DNA of 64,000 nucleotides, taken from Octopus sinensis. Taxonomy: Eukaryota. Location of the stretch: positions 4,278,001 through 4,342,000 of the forward strand of contig NC_043005.1 of the NCBI RefSeq assembly GCF_006345805.1. Reading direction: 5' to 3'. This document shows positions 2,897 to 44,130 of the stretch, piece after piece (the first letter of the stretch is position 1; the number at the start of each line of letters is the position of its first letter). Under the pieces are notes generated by a model. That model ran no database searches. It was not told where the DNA came from and saw only the letters and a program-made list of their open reading frames with translations. The translations under genes and the position numbers were made by a program.

Positions 2897-2989
2897 ATCA
2901 AACTTGTAAATATTCGAGCTGATGAAATAGTTGATGGAAACCCTAAATTAACTCTAGGACTAATATGGACTATTATTCTACATTTCCAA
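2897..2989 (+). CDS. shot: Spectraplakin exon w1 (C-terminal part of CH1), phase 0-0
   Basis: tttcag|ATC...CAA|gtaagt; [31 protein letters not shown]. Confidence 0.97.
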
Positions 2990-12212: not shown

Positions 12213-13214
12213 GTTTACTGAAATGTATTTGTACTCACTATTAAAACCAGACATCTTTTACTACACAATGTTATTTAACTTGTTTTTAATCTTGTTGCGA
12301 AGAAACAATTTTCTGCGTATTTTATTTTCTCACCCTTTTAAGTATTTTAAGCATTATATATAAAAAAAAAAAAACTCTCACACATTTATAAAATGTCACA
12401 GTTTTAGGCTGTTCTTTTTTTTTTTTTTCCAGCTAATATATTTGACTTTTTATTAACCGTATTTTAAAAATTCTTTACATATGGAAGACCATTCTTATTT
12501 GAGGAATTCTCATTCTTTGATCTTTTACCTTTGTTCAAATTTATTTCTTCTAATATGAAAACTTAACTTAACCTTCTAAATGTAACTCTATTCTTCCAAC
12601 CCAACGCTATAAATCTGTGCAACTTTATTCAATGCATAATACGGCAGTAAAGTTTTTTGCAAACCATATATCTACAACTCGGTTTCAATTCCTGGCTGGA
12701 ACCCTTACGCCAAAGGGGGAGATCTGCCTTAGGCAATGCTTTTATGAGAGCCGTGCTTTTGGTGCTGTTGTATAGGCTTGTGGGCCTGGGGTGTGGGGTT
12801 GCAAACTTGTGGGTTACCCTGTGTGGTACACACTCTATCTACTTCAGTGCTTGTGCTGTTATCGCTTACAGCCCTGGGGAATAGCATGAAGGGTGACAGT
12901 TTGGCATCTTCCACACTTTGATGACCCAGACATGAAATAATTTCTTGTACAGGGTACAGTGCTACCCATTTTGTAAATGGGTGGGGACTGTCACCGACTG
13001 AATCAACGCTTTCCACCCATCACTGCCACCCACACCAGTAGGTACCTGGTGCTTGTTTTATCAATGCCAGACAAATGAAAGACAGTCAGCAAGCCTAGAT
13101 GCAGCCAGACATTCCTCTTGTCCTCTTTCTGTCACTTCAACCCACCTTTTGCTTAAATAAAGGACAGAATTCTCTGAAGATTGAGATTCAGGACTTTCTG
13201 TTTGGCTCTTGTGT

Positions 13215-13640
13215 TTGCTTGTGTATATGTGTGTGTGTTGTATGTGTGCATCTATGGAGATGTGTGTATATACATATATGTATGTATGTGTATGTATGTG
13301 TGCTTATATGATGTGTGTAGATGCATATATGTGTGTGTATATGCATATGTGTATGTATGCATGTGTGTGTATATATGTATGCATGTGTGTGTATATATGT
13401 ATGCATGTGTGTGTATATATGTATGCATGTGTGTGTATATATGTATGCATGTGTGTGTATGTATGCGTGCATGCATATATGATGTGTATGTATGCGTGCA
13501 TGTGTGTGTGTGTGCATGTATATATGTGTATATGCCTGCATGTCTTTGTAAATGTGTATATAGGTATGTATACATTTATCTGTATATGTAAATTCATTTT
13601 TGTGTGTATATGTATGTGTGTGTGTTCTCATAACATGCTC
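13215..13640. repeat. Compound (TG/TA/TGCA) micro/minisatellite
   Basis: Includes tandem 22-bp units atgtatgcatgtgtgtgtatat; it produces the spurious stacked ORFs at 13181-13667. Confidence 0.9.
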
Positions 13641-14863
13641 ACATACACCTATACATACATCAGATAGAAATATCCTCAGTGGTGATAAGACTTTTCTGTA
13701 ATGAACTTGTAACTTGGTGGTTTGTACAATTATATTTGATACTACTTGAATGTTTCAGCAGCAATAATAATAATAATAATAATGGCTTCAGATTTTGGCA
13801 CTAGGCCAAGGAATCAAGTAAATGACATCAGTGTCAGTACTTGTACTTTACTTCAACTCCAAAAAGATAAAAGGCAAAGTCAGCTACAGTGGAATTTGAA
13901 CTCGCACTAATAATTCTGCCAGCCTGCCATTTTAACAATAATGATCTTTTCTACTATAAGCAGAAGGCCAGAAATTTTGGAAGGGGACAAGTCAGTTACA
14001 TTGACTCCAGTACTTGAATGATCTTCATTTTATCGACCCCAGAAAAATAGAAGGCAAAGCTGACTTCAGTGGAATTTGAACTCAGAATGTAATGAGCCAG
14101 AAGATATGCTACTATCCATTTTGTCTGATGCACTGATAATCCTGTCGGATTGCTGCCTTAATATTAATTCTTTGTACTACAGGCACAAGGTCTGAAAACT
14201 TGGGAGAGGGAGCTAGTCAATTATATTGACCCCCAGTGTCTAACTGGTACTTATTTTATTGAGCCAGGGAGGAAGAACAGTGAAGTTGACTTCGATGGAA
14301 TTTGAACCCAGAACATAAACAGCTTGAAGAAATGCCACTAAACATTTTGTCTGATGTGCTAACAATTCTGCCAACTCACCATCTTAGTAGTATTACTACT
14401 ACTACTGCTACCACTAATAGTAATAATAATAAAGCAAAACCAAACAGACTAAATGAAGTCTTAGTGTGTGTGTGTGTGTGTGACTTACACCTCTGTTGAT
14501 GGGTGTAATTTCTGTTTTTATATGCTGCACCCCACCCGTTCCGCTAATCTGGTTGATTACAACATTGGCTGGAATTACTAGAGATTATGTTTTAATACAT
14601 CATCATCTTCAGTGCAGGAGGATGGTTGAAGAATGGAACCGTTGAGTTGGTATCGTGTTTCACTCTTGAAGTGGTATCTTTTTACCAGAACACAGAACAT
14701 GATATGGCTGCTGAGAGAGAGAGAGTGTGTGTGTGTGTGCGCGCACGCGCGTGCGTCTGTGTGTGTGTCTCTGTGTGTGCGTGTGTGTGTATCTAAGTTT
14801 ACTTTCTCTGTGTCATGGTGTACACTATCAGTTCACTAGATTTTGGTGTAACAGAAAAATAAC

Positions 14864-28430: not shown

Positions 28431-31400
28431 ACGGAGGCTTGTCCCTTCTGTCCATGCCCCATCCTCCACCCGAATTCACCACTCACTGTATTCCCTTGCA
28501 CACAATGTCCCTCTATTAAATCTCTTCCCCACAACATAACCCCTGACCCTAACACCAAGGTTCAAAATGGTACCAAATTCTATCAGTAGACAAACTGTAT
28601 GAAGGTTCTTTGATGTGATCTGTCCTGTGGCTCTCATCCGTACAGAAATAGTGGATTAGCCCTTTTTGTATGGTTTAATCTTGTGAAAAATATCCATTCC
28701 TTTTAATCTCCAAGGAATCTTTGAGCAAGAAAGAAAAAAAGATGTCTTGTTGGAGAAGATAATATTCATGAATCTTTATATGGATTAAATTTTGTTCAAC
28801 GATACAACCCAGAAAAAGAAACAAATAAAATTATTGGCTATTGTTTGTGCATAATGAGAATTTTCTGTGGTTGGTCAGTGATGCACACATTTGCATTGGA
28901 ATATGAAACAAACAAGAAGAAATTATTATTATTATTTAGAGTTCTTCTAAACTTATTGAATAGATACAAAGAGATTAATTAGACAGGTCCTACTGCCTTG
29001 TGAGATGCATAAAGCTGTGTGTGTGTAAAATCGTTGTGTTAGTTTAGTGAAGAGTAAAATACTGTCATGAAACCAGGATCTTCTACACTTGAAAATGTCA
29101 GTATTAGTCTGGAATCCAATGGTTTTGGTATCCCCCAGAACTTGGATTGAGTGCTTCATTTGGAATACCTATCTTTATACCCTACCATGACCTTATATAA
29201 AAGAACACAAATAGAGTTGTGTTCTTCTTTCATGCCTATGCTACACTTGGAGCCAACCCCAAGTCGGATCTATGGTCTATATTGGATTTGGTACCTATGT
29301 ATCTACATACCTGCAGTACTCTACCGACAGGTGACACCTAATGGTTGTTTTACTTTACTGTGATCTCAGTGTTGTTATGGTACCCAGCTAGTCCTGGCAT
29401 CCTATGAGTTGGTGTTCCTAGATTCTAATGAACCCTGAAACATATATGGGTGTCTGTCTGTGTGTATAAAACTATAAGCTTTTACGAGAGAAAGGTTGAC
29501 AGTAACTTCTAGCTTTCAGTTTGCTTTCCTTTGTCACAGTGTGACAAAGGAAAGCAAGACAAAACTTCAAAGTCACTCTCAGTATTTTCCCTGTAATGCT
29601 TTAATAAATAGAGACACAACTAAAAAACATTAAATAACCCTTCAGTTTAATGTTAAATTGATTTTATATATATATGGCTTGACCTAGAAACAAACATTAC
29701 TTTGTGTATATAAAATCTTTTACTTGTTTCACTCATTTGACTCCGGCCATGCTGGGGAATACACACATATCTGTGTGTGTCCTGTGTTTTTCTCTCTCTG
29801 GTATTAAGCAGATTTACCTCCAAATAGGTTTAACCTGATAATTTTTCTTCAGGTGATCCAGTGTTCTACTTATTACTACTAAAACATTGAAGTGGGTGAT
29901 GGGGGGGGGGAACACTTTAGTCTCCTCTGAACTTTATTTATTTTTCTTAGTAGTGGTGGTGGTAGTGGGGGGAGGGCAGAAGATATCAAAGGTAAATTCA
30001 TAGCATCACCATCATCATCATCATTGCTTTCACGGTTTTATTACTTATACTATTACTTCTTGTGTTATCGCAACTATTCCCAACACTATTGTCACCACAA
30101 ACAAAAAGCTTCTTATTTTGTCCCCTGTTAGCTGTGATCAACCAAGCTTGTCATCAAAGGTGTTCCGGCCTTGACTATCCTTCCTTTTTCGCAACCATTG
30201 TTTAATGGTCATTATTAGATCATCATTGCACTTCCACATTTTTTTTTAAGCCAATCGGATGTGATTTGAGAAGACTTGGTTGCTAGTTCTACCAGATCAA
30301 ACACTTACAAAAAGGCTTCTTCATTACACTTGTATTTAATTGGCATATCAATTAGTGCTACAAATAAACTTTATAATTCTTGAAGAAAAAAGAAAACTGG
30401 TCTCAGATCAAGAATGAAAGGTTTAGGGTTGTTGCCAAATAAAATTCCAGTTGAAAGGTTTGTCCTGATTTCACCCAACTGGTTTATCTTAACCAATATT
30501 TCCAGGCCATTTTAATTCATTTGCTCCACTAATAATCTTGAGAACATTTTCAACACACAGTTTCATTCACTATCCTTTTACAAAGATAATGGCTTTCTCT
30601 ATATGTAATAGAAAAGAAAACCCCACAGTATTTGCATTAATTGCTAACCTTTTGACACCAACCCACCTAAAACTGTCCCTCATTCTTTGATACAAACTTC
30701 TTGTTTTAAAATTACCTAAATTAGAATTATCAAAATTTCTTGTTAATTTATGTTTGAAACACTTGTTTAATGACAGTGTTTTTAGTAAATTAATTTCAAA
30801 GTTAATTGAAACAAAGGTAGTATATTTCAGCAGAAATATGGTAACAAAGGTTTTCTATAATCATAATAAAAAATGGTGATTTGGAGGCGAAATGCATGAG
30901 ATGCTGTATTGCATTGTTCAAATGTTGCCATTCACTTTATTGTATGTTAGTCAAGGTACATTATTTTCCCTGATTTTTGTCAGCCTTCTTTATGATTGAA
31001 CAGATAGAATTAGAAAAAGCCATCCAACTGTGAATCATTTGTTTCTATAATTTATATCAATGAGGAAAGAGAATTGGCTTTAAAATTTCAAATCCCTCTT
31101 GGTCAGTCATAGTATTAGTGAGGCTTGAATAGTTATTCGATCGTTAACCCTTTTGTTACCGTGTCCCTGTTGAAATATATTTTGTTTCATTTAAGTTTGA
31201 AAATAATGAAGAATTGGAATCAAATAACTTTGTCCCTGTTCAGCTGATATTTGGAACATAAATTAATATGGAACTTGATGGGAAGTTTTAAATTTAGATC
31301 ATTTTTAAACATTTTGTATCATAGAACCAAGGGAGGAAGTCCCAGGCAGTTGGTATCAGAAATTGAATGATGCCATCTGGAATTTAGTGTGGTTAAGTAA

Positions 31401-32449: not shown

Positions 32450-33600
32450 AGGGGAAGGATTAAGTCTGTGTCATCAACTCCATTTCTTAATTGGTGATTA
32501 TTTTATTGACCCTGAAAGGTTGTATGGTAAAGTTCACCTCAGCAGGTTTGAACCTGGAATGCAAAGCCAGAAGAAATGCTGTTAGACATTTTGTCAGGTT
32601 TCAAATTTTGCCACAAGGTCAGCCATTTTGGGGAAGGGGATAAGTCGATTATATCAACCCCAATGTTTCACTGGTGCTTAATTTATTGGCCCCAAAAAGG
32701 TGAAAGGCAAAGTTGACCTCGGCAGAATTTGAACTCAAAATGTGAAGACAGACAAAATACCGCTAAGCATTTCACCTGGTGTGCTAACGATTCTACCAGC
32801 TCGCCACCTTTATGATTTCGAATTTTGCCACAAGGCAAAATAATGGGATGATCAGGTTATAGGTTTGTTCATTATAGGTTTGTTCAGCAAGAGCTGACAC
32901 GGGGCTAAACAACAAGACATTGGCCTGGCATCAGTTATTGATGCTGGGCAAGGTGGACTTTCTTTCTCTTCTTTGTAGACAACTCTTGGATGATTCACAG
33001 CAATCTGGAGAAAGGGGACGAGTTGATTACATCGACCCCTCCCCTCCCCCTCACGTATTCAACTGATACTTGATTTATCAACTTGAGCAGAATTTGAACT
33101 CATAACGTAGTGGCAGATGAAATACTGCTAAGCATTTTGTCCAGCACGCTAACTATTCTGCCAGTCTGCTGCCATAATAATAATAATAATAATAATAATG
33201 TTTTTTTTATTTAGGCCCAAAGCCGATGATTTTGAAAGTAGAGTGTAGTAGACAAATCCATTAACCCCAGTACTTGAATTTATTTTATCAGCCCCTGGGA
33301 GATGAAAGTTGACCTTGGCAAGATTTGAACTTGGAAAGTAGAAAATAATTTTTCCTGGTACGCTAACATTTCTGCTAGCTCAACTCTAATAATAATAATA
33401 GTAATAATCATAATAATAATTTAAAATTTTGACCCAAGGGCAGCAATTTTGAGAGAGGGTGGTAGGGGGCAAGTCAAATACATCACCCTTAGTGCTTAAC
33501 TGCTGCAATTAAGTACCAAAAGAATGAAAGACAAAATCAACCCTGGTGACATTTGAATGTAAAAAGTGAGAAGAAATACTACTAAACATTTTGTCCGATG
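32450..33600 (-). repeat. Head-to-tail array of about 5-6 family B SINEs (minus strand)
   Basis: Repeated aaaggcaaagttgacc...gaatttgaactc units separated by (AAT)n. Similar minus arrays lie at 13790-14385 and 16620-17220. Confidence 0.75.
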
Positions 33601-35038
33601 GGTTAAAGATTCTGCCTGTTTACAACCTAATATTGACAATAATAATAATAGTGATAATAATATATTAAGTAATCATTGTGATCAATTTGGTATGGCGTCA
33701 GTTTTTTGGCTGGGAAGTTTAGTGTTCTCTGTTCTATCCTTCAGTCAGAGCTGTATCTCGCAACCAACTTTAGCTGTCAACAATGCAAGTAAGACTGGTA
33801 GGAAAATAATTTGGTTGCAGGGTACCAAAATAATTGGCAATTATCGTTGTCCAGTTTATAGCTTTGTATTGTCCAGTTCAGATCTTTTTTTCCTTTTCAT
33901 TACATGTGAACAAATGATCAAGTGAATGAGTGAATGAATGAATGAGGGAATGAGTGAATGAATGAATGGAGAAGGAATGTATTTTTTTTCTTTTTTTTTT
34001 TTTTTTGCTTCCTGAAACAGAAATGAAAATTTTAATTAGAATATGATGATAATTATCAATCAGTATATCAGCATGGATGTTTTCATTGTCGAGTTGGTTG
34101 TTGTGCAATAAGTCAAAACTTCAGGAAATTTCGCACCGGCCACTTTAATTGAGCCTGTTGAGTTGTGTTTATTACACGAGTGGTGAGTAGCTGTAACAAC
34201 GAATGTGTAAGCCACCCCTTATAGGTAGGCGGCCACAAATAACCAGATAGCTGCATCACTGCCATATTGATTAAGCTATTGACGTTAAATGTCTCTCTTC
34301 TTTCTTCTTTCACTCTCTCTCTCTCTCTTTGTCTCTCTATCTCTGTCTCTGTTAATCTCCGGTGAATAGATTTCTGGTGATTGCATGAAGAGAGAAAAAC
34401 AAATATATCAACTACGTAATACAATGTTAAGATCTACCCAGTGTAGACTAATATAGACTAATATATAGATATTCATATATTTATATTTATTTTACAACAG
34501 CCGGTCTGCTCGGCTATTACACACATCTATGAATCTACTGTTTCTTTGTCAATCTTTCTTTCTTTCTTTCCTATAGCTTCTAGAAATATCTATAATCTTC
34601 AAGTGAAACTGAATCTTCAATATTTATTTTAGAATTTCTGAAATATTTATTGTTTCTTCCTTTTCTTTAACTGTCTTGAAAATGAAAACAAAACTGTCCT
34701 TTACAAGTGATTTTTAAAATATTATTGGAAAAAACCAATCGCTGTTCTATAATAGTGATTGACTGGTAATGTTATGTATTTTCTCTCCGTTATCGCCAAT
34801 GTTTAACATCAGTTTCTTCCACAAAATATTTTTCCATGTCTGTTGAATATCGACATTTCCAAAACCTGTCAGTTATGCATTTTTTCCTAGTTGAATATTT
34901 ATTTATATATTTGAAACACATATGGGATAAGAAAATGTATTTTGGTTAATTTGCATAACACATGCAATTTTATTTTTTAAAATCTTCTTTTAATCAATCA
35001 ATTTAAAACAAAATAAAACAAAAAACAAACAATAACAA

Positions 35039-35368
35039 ATGTCCAGATCATCTTTCTGGAAAGTCCTTAGACAAGCTCGGTCTCTTAGTCCAAGACCAAT
35101 CTCCAAAGCTGCTTCTAAAACTGAAGAAACTAAAGAATCTGATTCTGATAACACTACTAATTATATTCCGATATGGAGATCCAACCATTTGGACCAATGT
35201 CACCTCTTGCCTTCTTCACAAACACTGGGACCTTTACACCATTGTGATGAGTGTGGATCTCTTAGTTATTGTGATCATAAAATGTGCCAAATTAGTCCGA
35301 CAATAAAAGTCAACCCCTGGAAGACTTTACAGCCATATGTTACCTTTAAAAGTTGCTGCCAGAGTTTG
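35039..35368 (+). CDS. Candidate alternative first coding exon (110 aa) for a CH1-less spectraplakin isoform
   Basis: A/C-rich leader ...aacaataacaaATG with an in-frame TAA at -6. The 110 codons are non-repetitive and end TTG|gtaaga, a phase-0 donor matching the acceptor at 40381. Inr-like TCAGTT occurs at 34809 and 34869. Confidence 0.65.
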
Positions 35369-37439
35369 GTAAGAAAATAATTTCATTCTGTTCTATTATT
35401 ATCATTCTGTCTCTTTCCCCTCCCCACTTTCTCTCTCCCCCACTCTGTCTGTCTGTGACTGTTTGTTTGTGTCTGTCTGTCTGTGTCTGTCTGTCTCTCT
35501 CTCTCTCTGTATTCCAATATTATGTCGCAGCAACTGGCTCCCCCCCACCCCATCAAATGCTGCTCTACCCTAGACCTCCTCTACTTCACCAGTTCTATTT
35601 TCACTACAACATCAACCCCCTCCTACCCCCTCTCCTGTCTCCCCCCCCCTGCATCTTTCCAGTCTCTTACCACCTACACTCCTTACATCCTTCATCCTAA
35701 TCACTGTTTAATCCTTCTTCCCTATGGCTTCATCCATCTGTTGGCAACACAACCTCCCCATACCTTAACTTAATCGAACATTGACAACACATAACCCTAG
35801 CTAGCCATAGATGTTCTGAGTTCAAACTTCACCAAGGGGGACTCTACATTTCATTCTCCCAGGTTGCAGTGGTGTTGGGGGGGTGAAATCTAACAATAGC
35901 ATTAACAATTAACATGCTCTAGTAATTGCCATGGAAAAAGCAAAATGACCCTTACCCCCACCAGCTGCTGTGGCTGTAACCTTGTGCTGCCACCTTGTGG
36001 GGTTTAGGGTATTCCGTTCAATACCCAGTGGTGTATTCTTTCCTTGAGCAAGATACTTTCTTCCACGTTGCTCCAGTTCACTCAGCTGGCAAAAATACAT
36101 TGTAGCTGTAATTCGAAAGGATCTGTGTCATGCTGAATCTCCTTGAGAACTACGTTAAGGGTCCACGGGGCTGTGGAATGTTCGGCCATTTGCATGTTAA
36201 TTTCACAAGCAGGCTGTTCCGCTGAATGGATCAGCTGGAACACTAGTCTCGTAGTCACTGACAGTGCCAGTTTTTTTATAACCTTGTATGTCTGTTATTA
36301 AATCCTTATTTACTTTCACCTGAGCAGTTAGCCAGCCTTGGTGGAATTTTGTTTCGCTTTCTCTTTCTCTGCCCCACCCCCTCTCATTCTCAACTTACAT
36401 TGATTAAACACAAACGCTCACATTATTGGGCCATCACAAAAAAAAAGAAGGAAAGAAAATCCCCAGCTGTCTGAGCCAGCTGGTAACATGTGCATATTTG
36501 TGTGTGTGTGTGTGTGTGTGTCGTCGTCATTTAATCATGATTATCGTTTTCCATGTTGGCATGGGTTGGATGGTTCAGCAGGGACTGGCAAATCAAAAGG
36601 CTTCACCTTAGCTGTGTTTGTATTTATGCATATCTGTGCTTGTGTATGTGTCCCAGATCAAATGTAGCCGCAGTTCATATTTCATCATCATCATCATTTG
36701 ATGTCTGTTTTCCATGGTAGCATGGGTTGGACAGTTTGACTGGTGTCTGGGAAGCCAGGAGGCTGCACCAGGCTCCAGTCTGATCTGGCAGTGTTTCTAC
36801 AGCTGGATGCCCTTCCTAACGCCAACTACTCCAAGAGTGTAGTGGGTGCTTTTTATGTGCCAACGGCACAGGGGCCAAAGAGGGCTGGCAACGACCTTGA
36901 TCGTCAAGGCGGCGCTGGCATTGCCCACGTTCGGATGGTGCTTTTTATGTCCCACCGGTATATAACATCTAACATCATGACTGCCACTTTAGGCAAGAAA
37001 AGGCATAAACATCACTACTTCCCCTGTGTACCCCTGCACATCTCAGTTTCAAAATAACTTTAGTTTTTGCCATTGTCACATTACATTTAAGAGGATTACT
37101 ACATTACTGTGAGGGGGTGGGGTGAGGGGCTTGTGTTTTATTATTTATTTTATTATTTTACTTTATTTTTTTTTCAATTGTTATATTTGAGGATGGTCAT
37201 ATTTTGCCAATTAAACACACACACACACACACACACTACATTTAGCCGTTATTATTATTATTATTATTATCATTATTATATCAAAGCTCTTTCTTTGTGC
37301 GTCCTGTGACATCTTCTGTGCCTCCTCTTGTTCTTATTCCGTTCTCAACCCACAATTTCACACCAATTGCGAAACAAATACATATTTTTTGTTTGTTTGT
37401 TCCTCTAAGCATGAAACTTAAAAGTTCTCATGAAGTTGA

Positions 37440-40380: not shown

Positions 40381-40547
40381 ATATCTGATGTCGTTGTGCC
40401 TGGCCAGCCCGAAAACCTTACTGCTAAAGAAGCTCTTCTCCTATGGAGTCGCCGAACAACAGAGGGCTATCCTGGTATTAAAGTTACAGACTTCTCTACA
40501 AGCTGGCGGGATGGCAAAGCCTTCCTTTCCATAATCCACAGACACAG
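40381..40547 (+). CDS. shot: Spectraplakin exon w2 (start of CH2), phase 0-2
   Basis: ttttctctag|ATA...CACAG|gtaaga; [55 protein letters not shown](R), with the CH2 motifs LLLW and FSTSWRDG. Confidence 0.97.
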
Positions 40548-42146
40548 GTAAGAGTTGAAAGATCTTGTAGATTATGTAGCTTCACTTTTACCATTATATG
40601 CCTACCTTTCTGATTATTTGTTTCCTTATTAGACTAACTCATTCTAGCATGAGAAAGTGAAATGATTGTAGATTGGCAGAATCAGAACATCCTTATGTTC
40701 TGATTTTCCACATTCTGAGTTCAAATCCCACCAAAGTCAGCAGTCTCTTTCCTTCCTTTGGAGTTAATGAATTACTGGTCAAGTATTGGGGTTGATGCAC
40801 TCAGCTGTTCTCCCTTTTCCACCAAAAATTCAGGGCTTGTACCTATATTTGGAACAGTTGTTATTCAAGGGTGGGGGGGAATTGGGAGAATTGGTAGAGC
40901 ATCAAGCAAAATATCTTGTATTTGGATAGAGCGCCTCTGTTCTAAGGTCAAATTACACTGAGGTCGACTTTGTCTTTCTGGGGTTATCATCATTGTCGTT
41001 TAACATTCGCTTTCTCTGCTGGCATGGGTTGGACGGTTTGACTAAGGACTGGCAAGTCAGAAGGTTGCACCAGGCTCCAATCCGATCTGGCAGTGTTTCT
41101 ACAGCTGGATGCTCTTCTTAATGCCAACCACTCCAAGAGTGTAGTGGATGCTTTTTACATGATACTGGCATCGACCACGCTTGAATGGTGCTTTTTACGT
41201 GCCACCAGCATGGGAGCCAGTCAGGCGGCACTGGCACCAACCATGCTTGAATGGTGCTTTTATTGTGCCACTGGCGGTCAATAAAATAAAACACCAGTCA
41301 AATACTAGGGTTGATCTAATCAAATTAACTTCTGCTCCTAAATTTCATGTTTTGTGACTGTTAGAAACAATTATTATTTCAGTGGCAAAAATGGTTAAGA
41401 TTAATGTCTGCATTCTAAGCATGTGCCTGTAGATTGGAGAACAATAGTTGTGTGAGGGTTTGTGCCTTTGGTGGTCAGGGTAATCCTGGTTCTGTGAGGT
41501 TCCTTGTTTGGTGCTAGTTTGAGGTTTTCCTGTAGCAGGAGGACACCATCATAAATACGTGAACATACCTTATATATTATGTAGACTTTTCTCTTGTTTC
41601 ATCTTTCTTCCCCACCCATCTTTTATATAACCCCCCCACACACACAGGTTGTAGACTATCATTGTGATGACCCCTTCATCTATGCCCCTATAGCAACTGT
41701 CTTTACTTCTGAGTTCAAATTCCACCAAGGTTGACTTTGCCTTTCATCCTTTCTTGGTTGATAAAATAAGTACCAGTTAAATACTGGGGTTGATGGAATC
41801 GATTTAAGCCTTCCTCTGAAATTGCTAGCCATGTACCAAAACTTGAAATTATTATTATTGTTGTTGTTGTTATTTACCTGATACAAGACTGTTTGTGTCT
41901 CAGTTTAAAAGCTAAAATCATGCGTGTGGCTTCATGCTGATGGATGTATCTAGCTGTGTCTATCATTAAGGATACAAAGCCCATCAGTATCTGGGCTATC
42001 AAATGCTGACCTTAGGTTGTGTCATCCTGTCTCTGGCAAAGGCACCTAACTTTCTATCACACAGTCTATAAATAGATGCCAAATGTAAACATTCACAAAC
42101 TAGAAGGGTTGCCGGTCATATAACAAGAAAAAAGCAAAATACGTCT

Positions 42147-42752
42147 CTGAAGGTATGAGTCCCAATAATGCTTCTAAGAAATTCAGATCCTCCTAAATTT
42201 TGCAATGGGACAAGGTTGATTGTGAAGACATTTCCATCTAATGTGACAGAAGCTGCCATCATCAATGGATGTGCTTCTGGGGAAGAGGCTTTCATTCCAA
42301 GAATTCCAATCAAACTAACAGACTTGCCATTTGAATTCAAATGAACACAATTCCCAGTGTAACTTTGCTTTGCAATGGCTATTGATAAAGCTCAAGGTCA
42401 GTCTTTGAAATCTGCTGGCTTGCTTTTCTCATGGTCACCTTTATGTTGGTTGCTCCAGGGTAGGTAATTTGCAAGACTTTTATTTGTCTATGCCCCAAAC
42501 CAGAAAACAAAGAAGTTCTTATGTAATTTCCTTCAACATAAGTGGTAGAATTTATCTCCTTTCATAAAAGGGGTAAATTTTGTATTTTCGGTTATTATTA
42601 TTATTATTATTTTGTATTATGAATTCAGAATTGATTTCTCAATTGAAGAATAAATTGAATTTAGAATGACAAATTTCTGTACAACATATTTTGCTTTTTT
42701 CTTCCAAAATATAAGGAACAATTTAATTCCTGGGCAACGCTGGGTGCCTCTG
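42147..42752 (+). mobile_element. Helitron 3' remnant (PIF1-like helicase C-terminus, pseudogenised) with subterminal hairpin
   Basis: 42147-42530 translates LKV*VPIMLLRNSDPPKFCNGTRL...FIPRIP..LTDLPFEFK*TQFPV*LCFAMAIDKAQGQSL / FSHGHLYVGCSRVG, matching Helitron helicase motifs, with stops and a frameshift. cctgggcaacgctggg at 42729-42744 resembles the Helitron 3' hairpin. Confidence 0.9.
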
Positions 42753-42841
42753 TATTTTTACAAACTTCTTTGAGATTTAGAATCTGTTTCTTTTTTCTTT
42801 TTGCCTAAGTTTATCTTTTTTTCTTCTTTTTTCTCTTTTAG

Positions 42842-42957
42842 ACCTGACTTAGTCGATTATAGGCAGGTGCGAAGAAATACTCCACGACAGAATCTAAATT
42901 TGGCTTTTAACATTGCTGAATCTGAATTTGGCGTTACCAAATTGCTGGATGCAGAAG
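42842..42957 (+). CDS. shot: Spectraplakin exon w3 (CH2), phase 2-1
   Basis: Long pyrimidine tract ttttag|A...GAAG|gtaaat; PDLVDYRQVRRNTPRQNLNLAFNIAESEFGVTKLLDAE(D). Confidence 0.97.
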
Positions 42958-43761
42958 GTAAATTCTTATTTTCCTTAAAATGTTTATTTTTTAATTTCCA
43001 AAGTTGTCGACTTATTGCCAATGAATATGGAACTGAGAATAGTTAGTCTTATTTGAATTTATCCTATTTATTATATTGCTGGTTGTAATTAGCACGAGTC
43101 TCTGTGTTGTCACTCAATCTGCTAGAAATAGTAGCTAAATTACCCCTAAATCACACTCCACTGTCCTAAAAAAACAGGATGCTTTCGATAGTATAGCTCT
43201 AGAGGAACACAAGGTTTTCAATACCCTTACTGACAGTCATTGGTCATTTAAGGGCTGCTAAAATAAACAAACATAAATACATGATGTTATTCTCTTTGCA
43301 CACTGAAAAATAAAGGCTATTATCCTGGTATGTTTCATGGCTGGTTGGCCACCCTTCAGAGGATATGTACCCCTCATTCTCTTGCCCACGGAGAAAACTT
43401 AATACATATAGCTATTTAGATCAAACACAAACTAGGACAGCCTAGCTGAAATTTCACATTATGCATTTGTCAATGGTGGAATTAAGGAAATCTCCTTAAT
43501 TTTACTCTGTGTGCAAAGAGAAAAAATAAGAGAGGTGTACATTTGTTGTCTTTCCATAGCATGAGCATTATAAACGATAGGCTAACTACATTATTATTAT
43601 TATTATTATTATTTTTAGAAATAGACAAATACACAAAATTTCAGGCCTTACGCTTATAGTAGAAAAGATTAATTTAATCAGAATTTGCAAAGTGACTCAA
43701 GGGACAAGAGTTTCATACAAGCCTTTGAATCACTTTGTAACTTCTACTAAGTAAAATAATA

Positions 43762-44023: not shown

Positions 44024-44130
44024 ATGTCGATGTTCAGGAGCCAGATGAGAAGTCTGTTATAACATACGTGTCGTCATTATATGATGTCTTTCCAGATGTT
44101 CCGAGTGTTGAACAATCTCTAAGAGATAAT
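44024..44130 (+). CDS. shot: Spectraplakin exon w4 (end of CH2), phase 1-0
   Basis: tttcag|AT...AAT|gtaaga; (D)[35 protein letters not shown], with the conserved [14 protein letters not shown] motif. Confidence 0.97.

Follow-up and report, generated by a model that had tools for sequence, protein, structure and literature searches.

A coleoid-wide alternative first coding exon predicted to give a cephalopod spectraplakin-type gene a CH2-only N-terminus

The spectraplakins Short stop (Shot), MACF1 and dystonin each produce CH2-only isoforms from internal start sites; these isoforms are weak binders of F-actin, and each has a lead sequence of its own. Shot is the single invertebrate spectraplakin gene of Drosophila and has several N-terminal start sites, one of which yields the C-type form (Shot-PC, or Shot-L(C)). 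Mammals have the corresponding type 3 forms, MACF1a3 (ACF7 isoform 3) and BPAG1a3/b3, in which a 'half ABD' follows an N-terminal sequence of its own. Leads of this kind can act as targeting modules, and that of BPAG1a3 has lipidation motifs (myristoylation/palmitoylation). Plectin has many alternative first exons (1, 1a–1j), which supply short isoform-specific N-terminal targeting peptides.

Here, we analyze a stretch of 64,000 nucleotides from Octopus sinensis contig NC_043005.1 (the window) and describe an exon that falls within the actin-binding domain (ABD) region of a gene of this family. Judged by sequence comparison, positions 35039–35368 are a coleoid-wide alternative first exon, predicted to create a CH2-only ('type 3' or 'C-type') N-terminus. 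We put at roughly 0.85 the probability that a cephalopod spectraplakin-type gene uses this sequence as an alternative first coding exon, fused to CH2 with CH1 skipped. An initial annotation, drawn from the letters of the window, had already proposed that a spectraplakin without CH1 begins here. In its essentials that proposal holds, in that the exon codes for protein and is conserved together with its donor, and a junction to CH2 is present in one gene model; a full-length CH1-less protein is inferred, as the sole model stops after CH2 exon 2.

By its matches, the window carries the 5' part of a plakin/spectraplakin gene, with a CH1-CH2 ABD followed by a plakin domain; the rod, EF-hand and GAS2 parts would lie beyond the 3' end of the window. 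The features on which the argument turns are as follows.

2897–2989, forward strand: last CH1 exon, matching profile positions 71–108 of 109 in Pfam CH (PF00307), with the phase-0 donor CAA/GTAAGT
34808–34874, forward strand: two Inr-like (A)TCAGTT motifs, a proposed transcription start site (TSS) of putative function
35033–35035, forward strand: in-frame TAA at position −6; the TAA-NNN-ATG arrangement is also present in cuttlefish contig L002
35039–35368, forward strand: alternative first coding exon for a 110-aa lead peptide (MSRSSFWKVLRQARSLSPRP...KSCCQSL), assigned from reading frame, gene model and cross-species conservation
35369–35374, forward strand: splice donor GTAAGA, phase 0, identical in octopod contig L001 and cuttlefish contig L002
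40381–40547, forward strand: CH2 exon 1 (ISDVVVPGQ...IIHRH/R), phase 0, the acceptor exon for the lead exon
42842–42957, forward strand: CH2 exon 2 (PDLVDYRQV...LLDAE), placed by tblastn of the O. bimaculoides model
44024–44130, forward strand: CH2 exon 3, placed by structure-sequence match, which completes the CH2 domain if splicing continues

The lead exon lies inside the 37.4-kb intron between CH1 and CH2 (2989 to 40381), 5.0 kb upstream of the CH2 acceptor. This acceptor (...ttctctag; ttttcttttctctag/ATATCTGAT) opens a phase-0 CH2 exon, and the donor of the exon at 2897–2989 is its normal upstream partner. Among solved structures, plectin and MACF1 supply the closest actin-binding domains to the three CH2 exons (E 8e-47 to 3e-43), with spectrin, alpha-actinin and dystrophin scoring behind them, and the spliced product matched Pfam CH. 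Further downstream, concatenated exons from 46.5–56.5 kb gave hits to the plakin domains of plectin (3pdy, 2odv), BPAG1 (2iak) and desmoplakin (3r6n).

Two other stretches of the locus deserve mention in their own right. The intron between CH2 exons 1 and 2 holds a stop-free Pif1-type DNA helicase fragment at 42159–42341 on the forward strand (Pfam Pif1_2B_dom, E 1.4e-5), most likely the relic of a Helitron-like transposon. The other stretch, 831–1562 on the reverse strand, lies upstream of the CH1 exon and stays free of stops for 244 codons with normal amino-acid complexity (...ELTVPWEENIDNADKQKEKRYEKLIEECREQGW...); it found no match in a Pfam scan and looks like a decayed mobile-element ORF.

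At the exon itself, the letters agree with what the initial annotation had read in them. An A/C-rich leader occupies 35005–35038, immediately before the ATG at 35039, and the in-frame stop at −6 is the TAA at 35033–35035. From the ATG, 110 codons run to TTG at 35366–35368, with GTAAGA following from 35369 in phase 0, and an unspliced frame closes at 35380 as a 113-aa ORF. The in-frame TAA rules out use of the exon as internal coding sequence in transcripts that contain CH1. The start context is not strong, with C at −3. The exon had also been placed in a repeat-poor region of about 2 kb; in a self-comparison of the window, 34501–36000 does lack any repeat common to the rest, and 34001–34500 contains 14% repeat, but equally clean stretches exist elsewhere, for example at 28501–29500 and 42001–43500.

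We rejected ORF length as evidence for coding. The window contains 5 ATG-initiated ORFs of at least 110 codons; first-order Markov simulations average 1.8 such ORFs and never exceed 5. Length alone is therefore within what chance can give, and it is the comparative evidence that makes the case. Long, imperfect microsatellites of the (TG/CA)n and (TCTG)n types occur at 13178–13754 and in many other places (e.g. 35400–35500); spurious frames of 100–190 codons on both strands come from them and make up most of the window's long ORFs.

A protein search with the lead peptide yielded one cluster, represented by a 113-aa ORF on a 2-kb Logan contig (P0001). Its second member is XP_052827051.1, a 231-aa 'uncharacterized protein LOC106880762 isoform X10 [Octopus bimaculoides]' with the layout MSRSSFWKVLKQARSLSPRP...KSCCQSL/ISDVVVPGQ...IIHRHR/PDLVDYRQV...LLDAE, then GKFLFSLKYLFL.... 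When aligned to the window by tblastn, this protein maps to 35039–35368, then to 40381 onward and then to 42842 onward. Its junction splices the lead exon in frame to the first CH2 exon, donor and acceptor both being in phase 0. Between the window and this protein the lead peptide is 96% identical, with one 2-codon indel, and the CH2 exons are 100% identical.

The 35368^40381 junction that had been predicted for the window is therefore the one that RefSeq uses for the sister species O. bimaculoides, in a single automated Gnomon model. As a rule, NCBI adds alternative Gnomon isoforms only where transcripts have been aligned. To call the exon 'novel', as the initial annotation did, was an overstatement, as an automated RefSeq model already includes its orthologue and spectraplakins are known to have CH2-only isoforms. 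A search of one literature library for LOC106880762 found no paper, and exact look-up of the window's own 113-aa ORF and of the window version of the X10 product returned no database entry. A word-indexed protein search with the CH2 exons, run on 90% clusters that may hide long isoforms, returned no octopus full-length spectraplakin.

The C-terminus of XP_052827051.1 is a read-through of the 42957 donor into the intron, at which point CH2 would be truncated. This ending bears on the alternative that survives best, in which the exon is genuine but most of its transcripts are short. Intron retention or early polyadenylation downstream of CH2 exon 2 would then yield a product of ~231–233 aa, made up of the lead peptide and part of CH2, or else an NMD or regulatory transcript, with no long form. 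The sole exon-bearing model ends in just this way, and the equivalent read-through in the window (42958–43046, forward strand) gives a short open tail, GKFLFSLKCLFFNFQSCRLIANEYGTENS followed by a stop, and hence a 233-aa product. However, the tail shows no conservation from one octopus to the other (GKFLFSLKCLFFNFQSCRLIANEYGTENS versus GKFLFSLKYLFLNFESCRWIWIWIWNQFL), diverging quickly as an intron does, while the CH2 exons before it are identical throughout. A protein ending there would be without the last third of CH2 (44024–44130) and would be unlikely to fold, and a non-productive transcript hardly explains conservation of the lead exon over about the whole coleoid radiation, which we describe below. 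Flies and mammals, moreover, have long CH2-only isoforms. In our reading, XP_052827051.1 models a transcript that is partial or incompletely spliced, and not the main product, and we consider it unlikely that short transcripts are the locus's principal output; a long CH1-less spectraplakin is likely.

Conservation of the exon was examined at two distances. A Logan contig from run SRR11869391 (L001) is collinear with window positions 33393–35495 and is therefore genomic. The ORF is 95.7% identical between this octopod contig and the window (310/324), compared with 89.1% for the upstream 1.6 kb and 85.5% downstream (Fisher p = 1.2e-4). Within the ORF there is a single indel, of 6 bp and in frame, and both the ATG and GTAAG are kept. 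The dN/dS for this pair is 0.64 (4 synonymous and 10 non-synonymous changes), a value indistinguishable from neutrality in a test without power at so short a distance. Some nearby non-coding 100-bp bins are also 98–100% identical. Among the DNA upstream of the exon, blocks at 33793–33892, 34293–34392 and 34812–34867 show 98–100% identity to L001 against a background of 89%. These blocks may serve the internal start site as promoters or enhancers; in the cuttlefish contig no such block can be recognised.

At the greater distance, an exhaustive HMMER search of 1.84 billion representatives recovered a cuttlefish ORF (P0005, E 2.5e-12), which sits on four near-identical 1.8-kb Logan contigs (L002–L005). 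One of the underlying runs, ERR12945500, comprises Acanthosepion esculentum short reads for coverage analysis (Sepia officinalis genome preprint). The cuttlefish ORF has 44% identity to that of the window. It starts MSKFSFWKFLRRARSLSPRP, with TAA at −6, and ends ...KKPYRSL before GTAAGA, which forms a phase-0 donor at the same aligned codon as the window donor. All indels between the two ORFs are multiples of three. Similarity at the DNA level is confined to the first 68 nt around the start codon (79%), and the upstream and downstream flanks of the cuttlefish contig align to the window no better than shuffled sequence.

The alignment spans 107 codons and contains 47 identical residues, 22 of them encoded by different codons. 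Comparison of substitution rates gave dN 0.50 and dS 1.57, a dN/dS of 0.32, with a significant synonymous excess (p = 0.0017). Codon-level conservation with dN/dS<1 in related species, which had been named as one check on the exon, is thus found in the cuttlefish, which also retains the start, the −6 stop and the GTAAGA donor. The exon is intact in all five cuttlefish ORF variants, and these diverge after the donor, including by a frameshift in a poly-A run.

The same comparison makes it very improbable that the sequence is an independent gene within the intron, encoding a 113-aa micro-protein and undergoing no splicing. Such a gene would suit an unspliced ORF that closes three codons past the donor, and ORF callers do give a protein of 113–136 aa in genomic contigs. 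Conservation, however, stops exactly at GTAAGA. Beyond it, read-through gives VRK or VRKII and a stop in octopods, and VRTKKKLFLFF... versus VRTKKSYFYFF... in cuttlefish. As these later codons and the position of the stop vary between species, and even between cuttlefish alleles through the poly-A frameshift, constraint ends exactly at the splice donor, which argues against a protein that extends past it; XP_052827051.1, in addition, splices the exon to CH2.

Least credible of all is a chance ORF over a conserved non-coding element (an intronic enhancer or promoter) that is not translated: an ORF length within chance, an octopod–octopod dN/dS of 0.64 and adjoining non-coding bins of 98–100% identity would accommodate it, but in the cuttlefish the open frame, start codon, −6 stop and donor all persist, with indels in multiples of three, dN/dS at 0.32 and many identical residues written in different codons, amid surrounding DNA that has no remaining similarity.

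As an alternative first coding exon, 35039–35368 encodes the lead peptide. Its residues that are invariant in the four-sequence alignment are M1 S2, S5 F6 W7 K8, L10; A13 R14 S15 L16 S17 P18 R19 P20; I43 P44, R47, L51 D52 Q53; L63 G64 P65, H67; C69, C72 G73 S74, C78, C83; F103 K104 and S109 L110. Two motifs are kept across about the whole coleoid radiation, MSxxSFWKxLxxARSLSPRP at the N-terminus and HxCxxCG(x5-6)C(x4)C. The peptide had no match in Pfam and no sequence match in the PDB. No relatives outside cephalopods were found by the HMMER search of 1.84 billion representatives, by a profile search with the four-sequence alignment, which added no further species, or by a metagenome-contig scan with the lead-peptide alignment, which returned no relatives at all.

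AlphaFold2 run on the four-sequence alignment gave no confident fold (mean pLDDT 46.7), with a short helix at residues 6–13 and a weak hairpin near the Cys cluster. This pLDDT falls short of what a fold search needs, and the lead peptide is predicted to be mostly disordered. The ARSLSPRP segment is likely a phosphorylation, phospho-regulated or docking site, and the His/Cys4 cluster is a candidate for a small zinc-binding or S-acylated element that would target or regulate the CH2-only isoform. A broader suggestion, which we advance tentatively and with some doubt, is that the lead peptide is a coleoid innovation in which the Cys cluster, as a zinc or S-acyl anchor to a membrane or partner, and ARSLSPRP, as a phospho-switch, together form a targeting module, one unrelated to the myristoyl/palmitoyl lead of dystonin type 3 in vertebrates and possibly tied to the elaborate nervous system of cephalopods.

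Two other origins or kinships of the peptide were considered and rejected. It is single-copy, with no repeat partner in the window and only orthologues among the 1.84 billion representatives, and a transposon origin was discarded on that ground. A 622-aa protein of ~8 tandem 76-residue units (P0006; ...KCPASSFMQIVNPLENFTPFWTFPSCQ...) aligned to residues 59–106 in 8 stretches with an E of 1e-10; because one unit by itself reaches no more than 22.7 bits in a pairwise comparison, the match is probably due to chance and inflated by the repeats.

The Inr-like motifs put forward as the TSS of the CH1-less isoform are present in the letters (ATCAGTT at 34808 and TCAGTT at 34869), but they are poor evidence for a start site. 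Five upstream ATGs (34836, 34875, 34922, 34935 and 34962) lie between the motifs and the ATG at 35039, within 205 nt, and L001 retains the first motif and has TCAGAT in place of the second. On account of the five intervening ATGs, we disfavor these motifs as the TSS. Either the TSS would lie nearer 35039, or the 5' UTR would be laden with upstream ORFs (uORFs); translation of the CH1-less isoform may be uORF-regulated. Cuttlefish contig L002 has a tiny in-frame uORF (ATG CAC ATG CTG GTT CAA TAA) that ends 3 nt before the main ATG.

We propose the following mechanism for expression of the CH1-less isoform. An internal promoter a short distance upstream of the exon would start transcription, and translation would begin at ATG 35039. 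The phase-0 donor TTG/GTAAGA (35368/35369) would then be spliced to the phase-0 acceptor at 40381, giving a product in which the 110-residue lineage-specific lead peptide is joined directly to CH2 and replaces all upstream sequence, including CH1. By analogy with Shot C-type, MACF1a3 and BPAG1a3, this isoform would bind F-actin weakly, and the lead peptide would provide isoform-specific regulation or targeting. Translation would continue from CH2 into a full-length rod/GAS2 protein.

The exon would extend to lophotrochozoans the CH2-only, internal-start design known in flies and mammals, and it supports the view of an ancient and actively maintained isoform class. It is also a gain for annotation, as the exon has so far appeared only in an 'uncharacterized protein' of one octopus, and no called product containing it was found for the species of the window. 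The conserved lead peptide, finally, offers a handle for antibodies or in situ probes with which to ask where and why a weak-actin-binding spectraplakin is used. Apart from these points, 35039–35368 is an ordinary alternative first exon.

Set beside the known systems, the octopus exon differs most plainly from the first exons of plectin, which splice before CH1 and keep the full ABD, whereas the octopus exon lies after CH1 and removes it. XP_052827051.1 contains the orthologue of the window exon and uses the same splice point to CH2, and differs in being an automated model from another species whose 231 aa end in a retained intron. With MACF1a3 and the type 3 forms BPAG1a3/b3, the octopus product would share a CH2-only 'half ABD' preceded by an N-terminal sequence of its own. 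Unlike those mammalian leads, that of the octopus is without Gly-2, and so without an N-myristoylation site, is much more Cys/His-rich and carries HxCxxCG..C....C together with ARSLSPRP; no homology between them was detected. No sequence similarity was detected between the octopus and Shot leads either, and for the octopus we infer the promoter and the full-length continuation. The likeness to Drosophila Shot C-type is one of arrangement, in which an internal start would place a unique lead in front of CH2 only, with CH1 absent.
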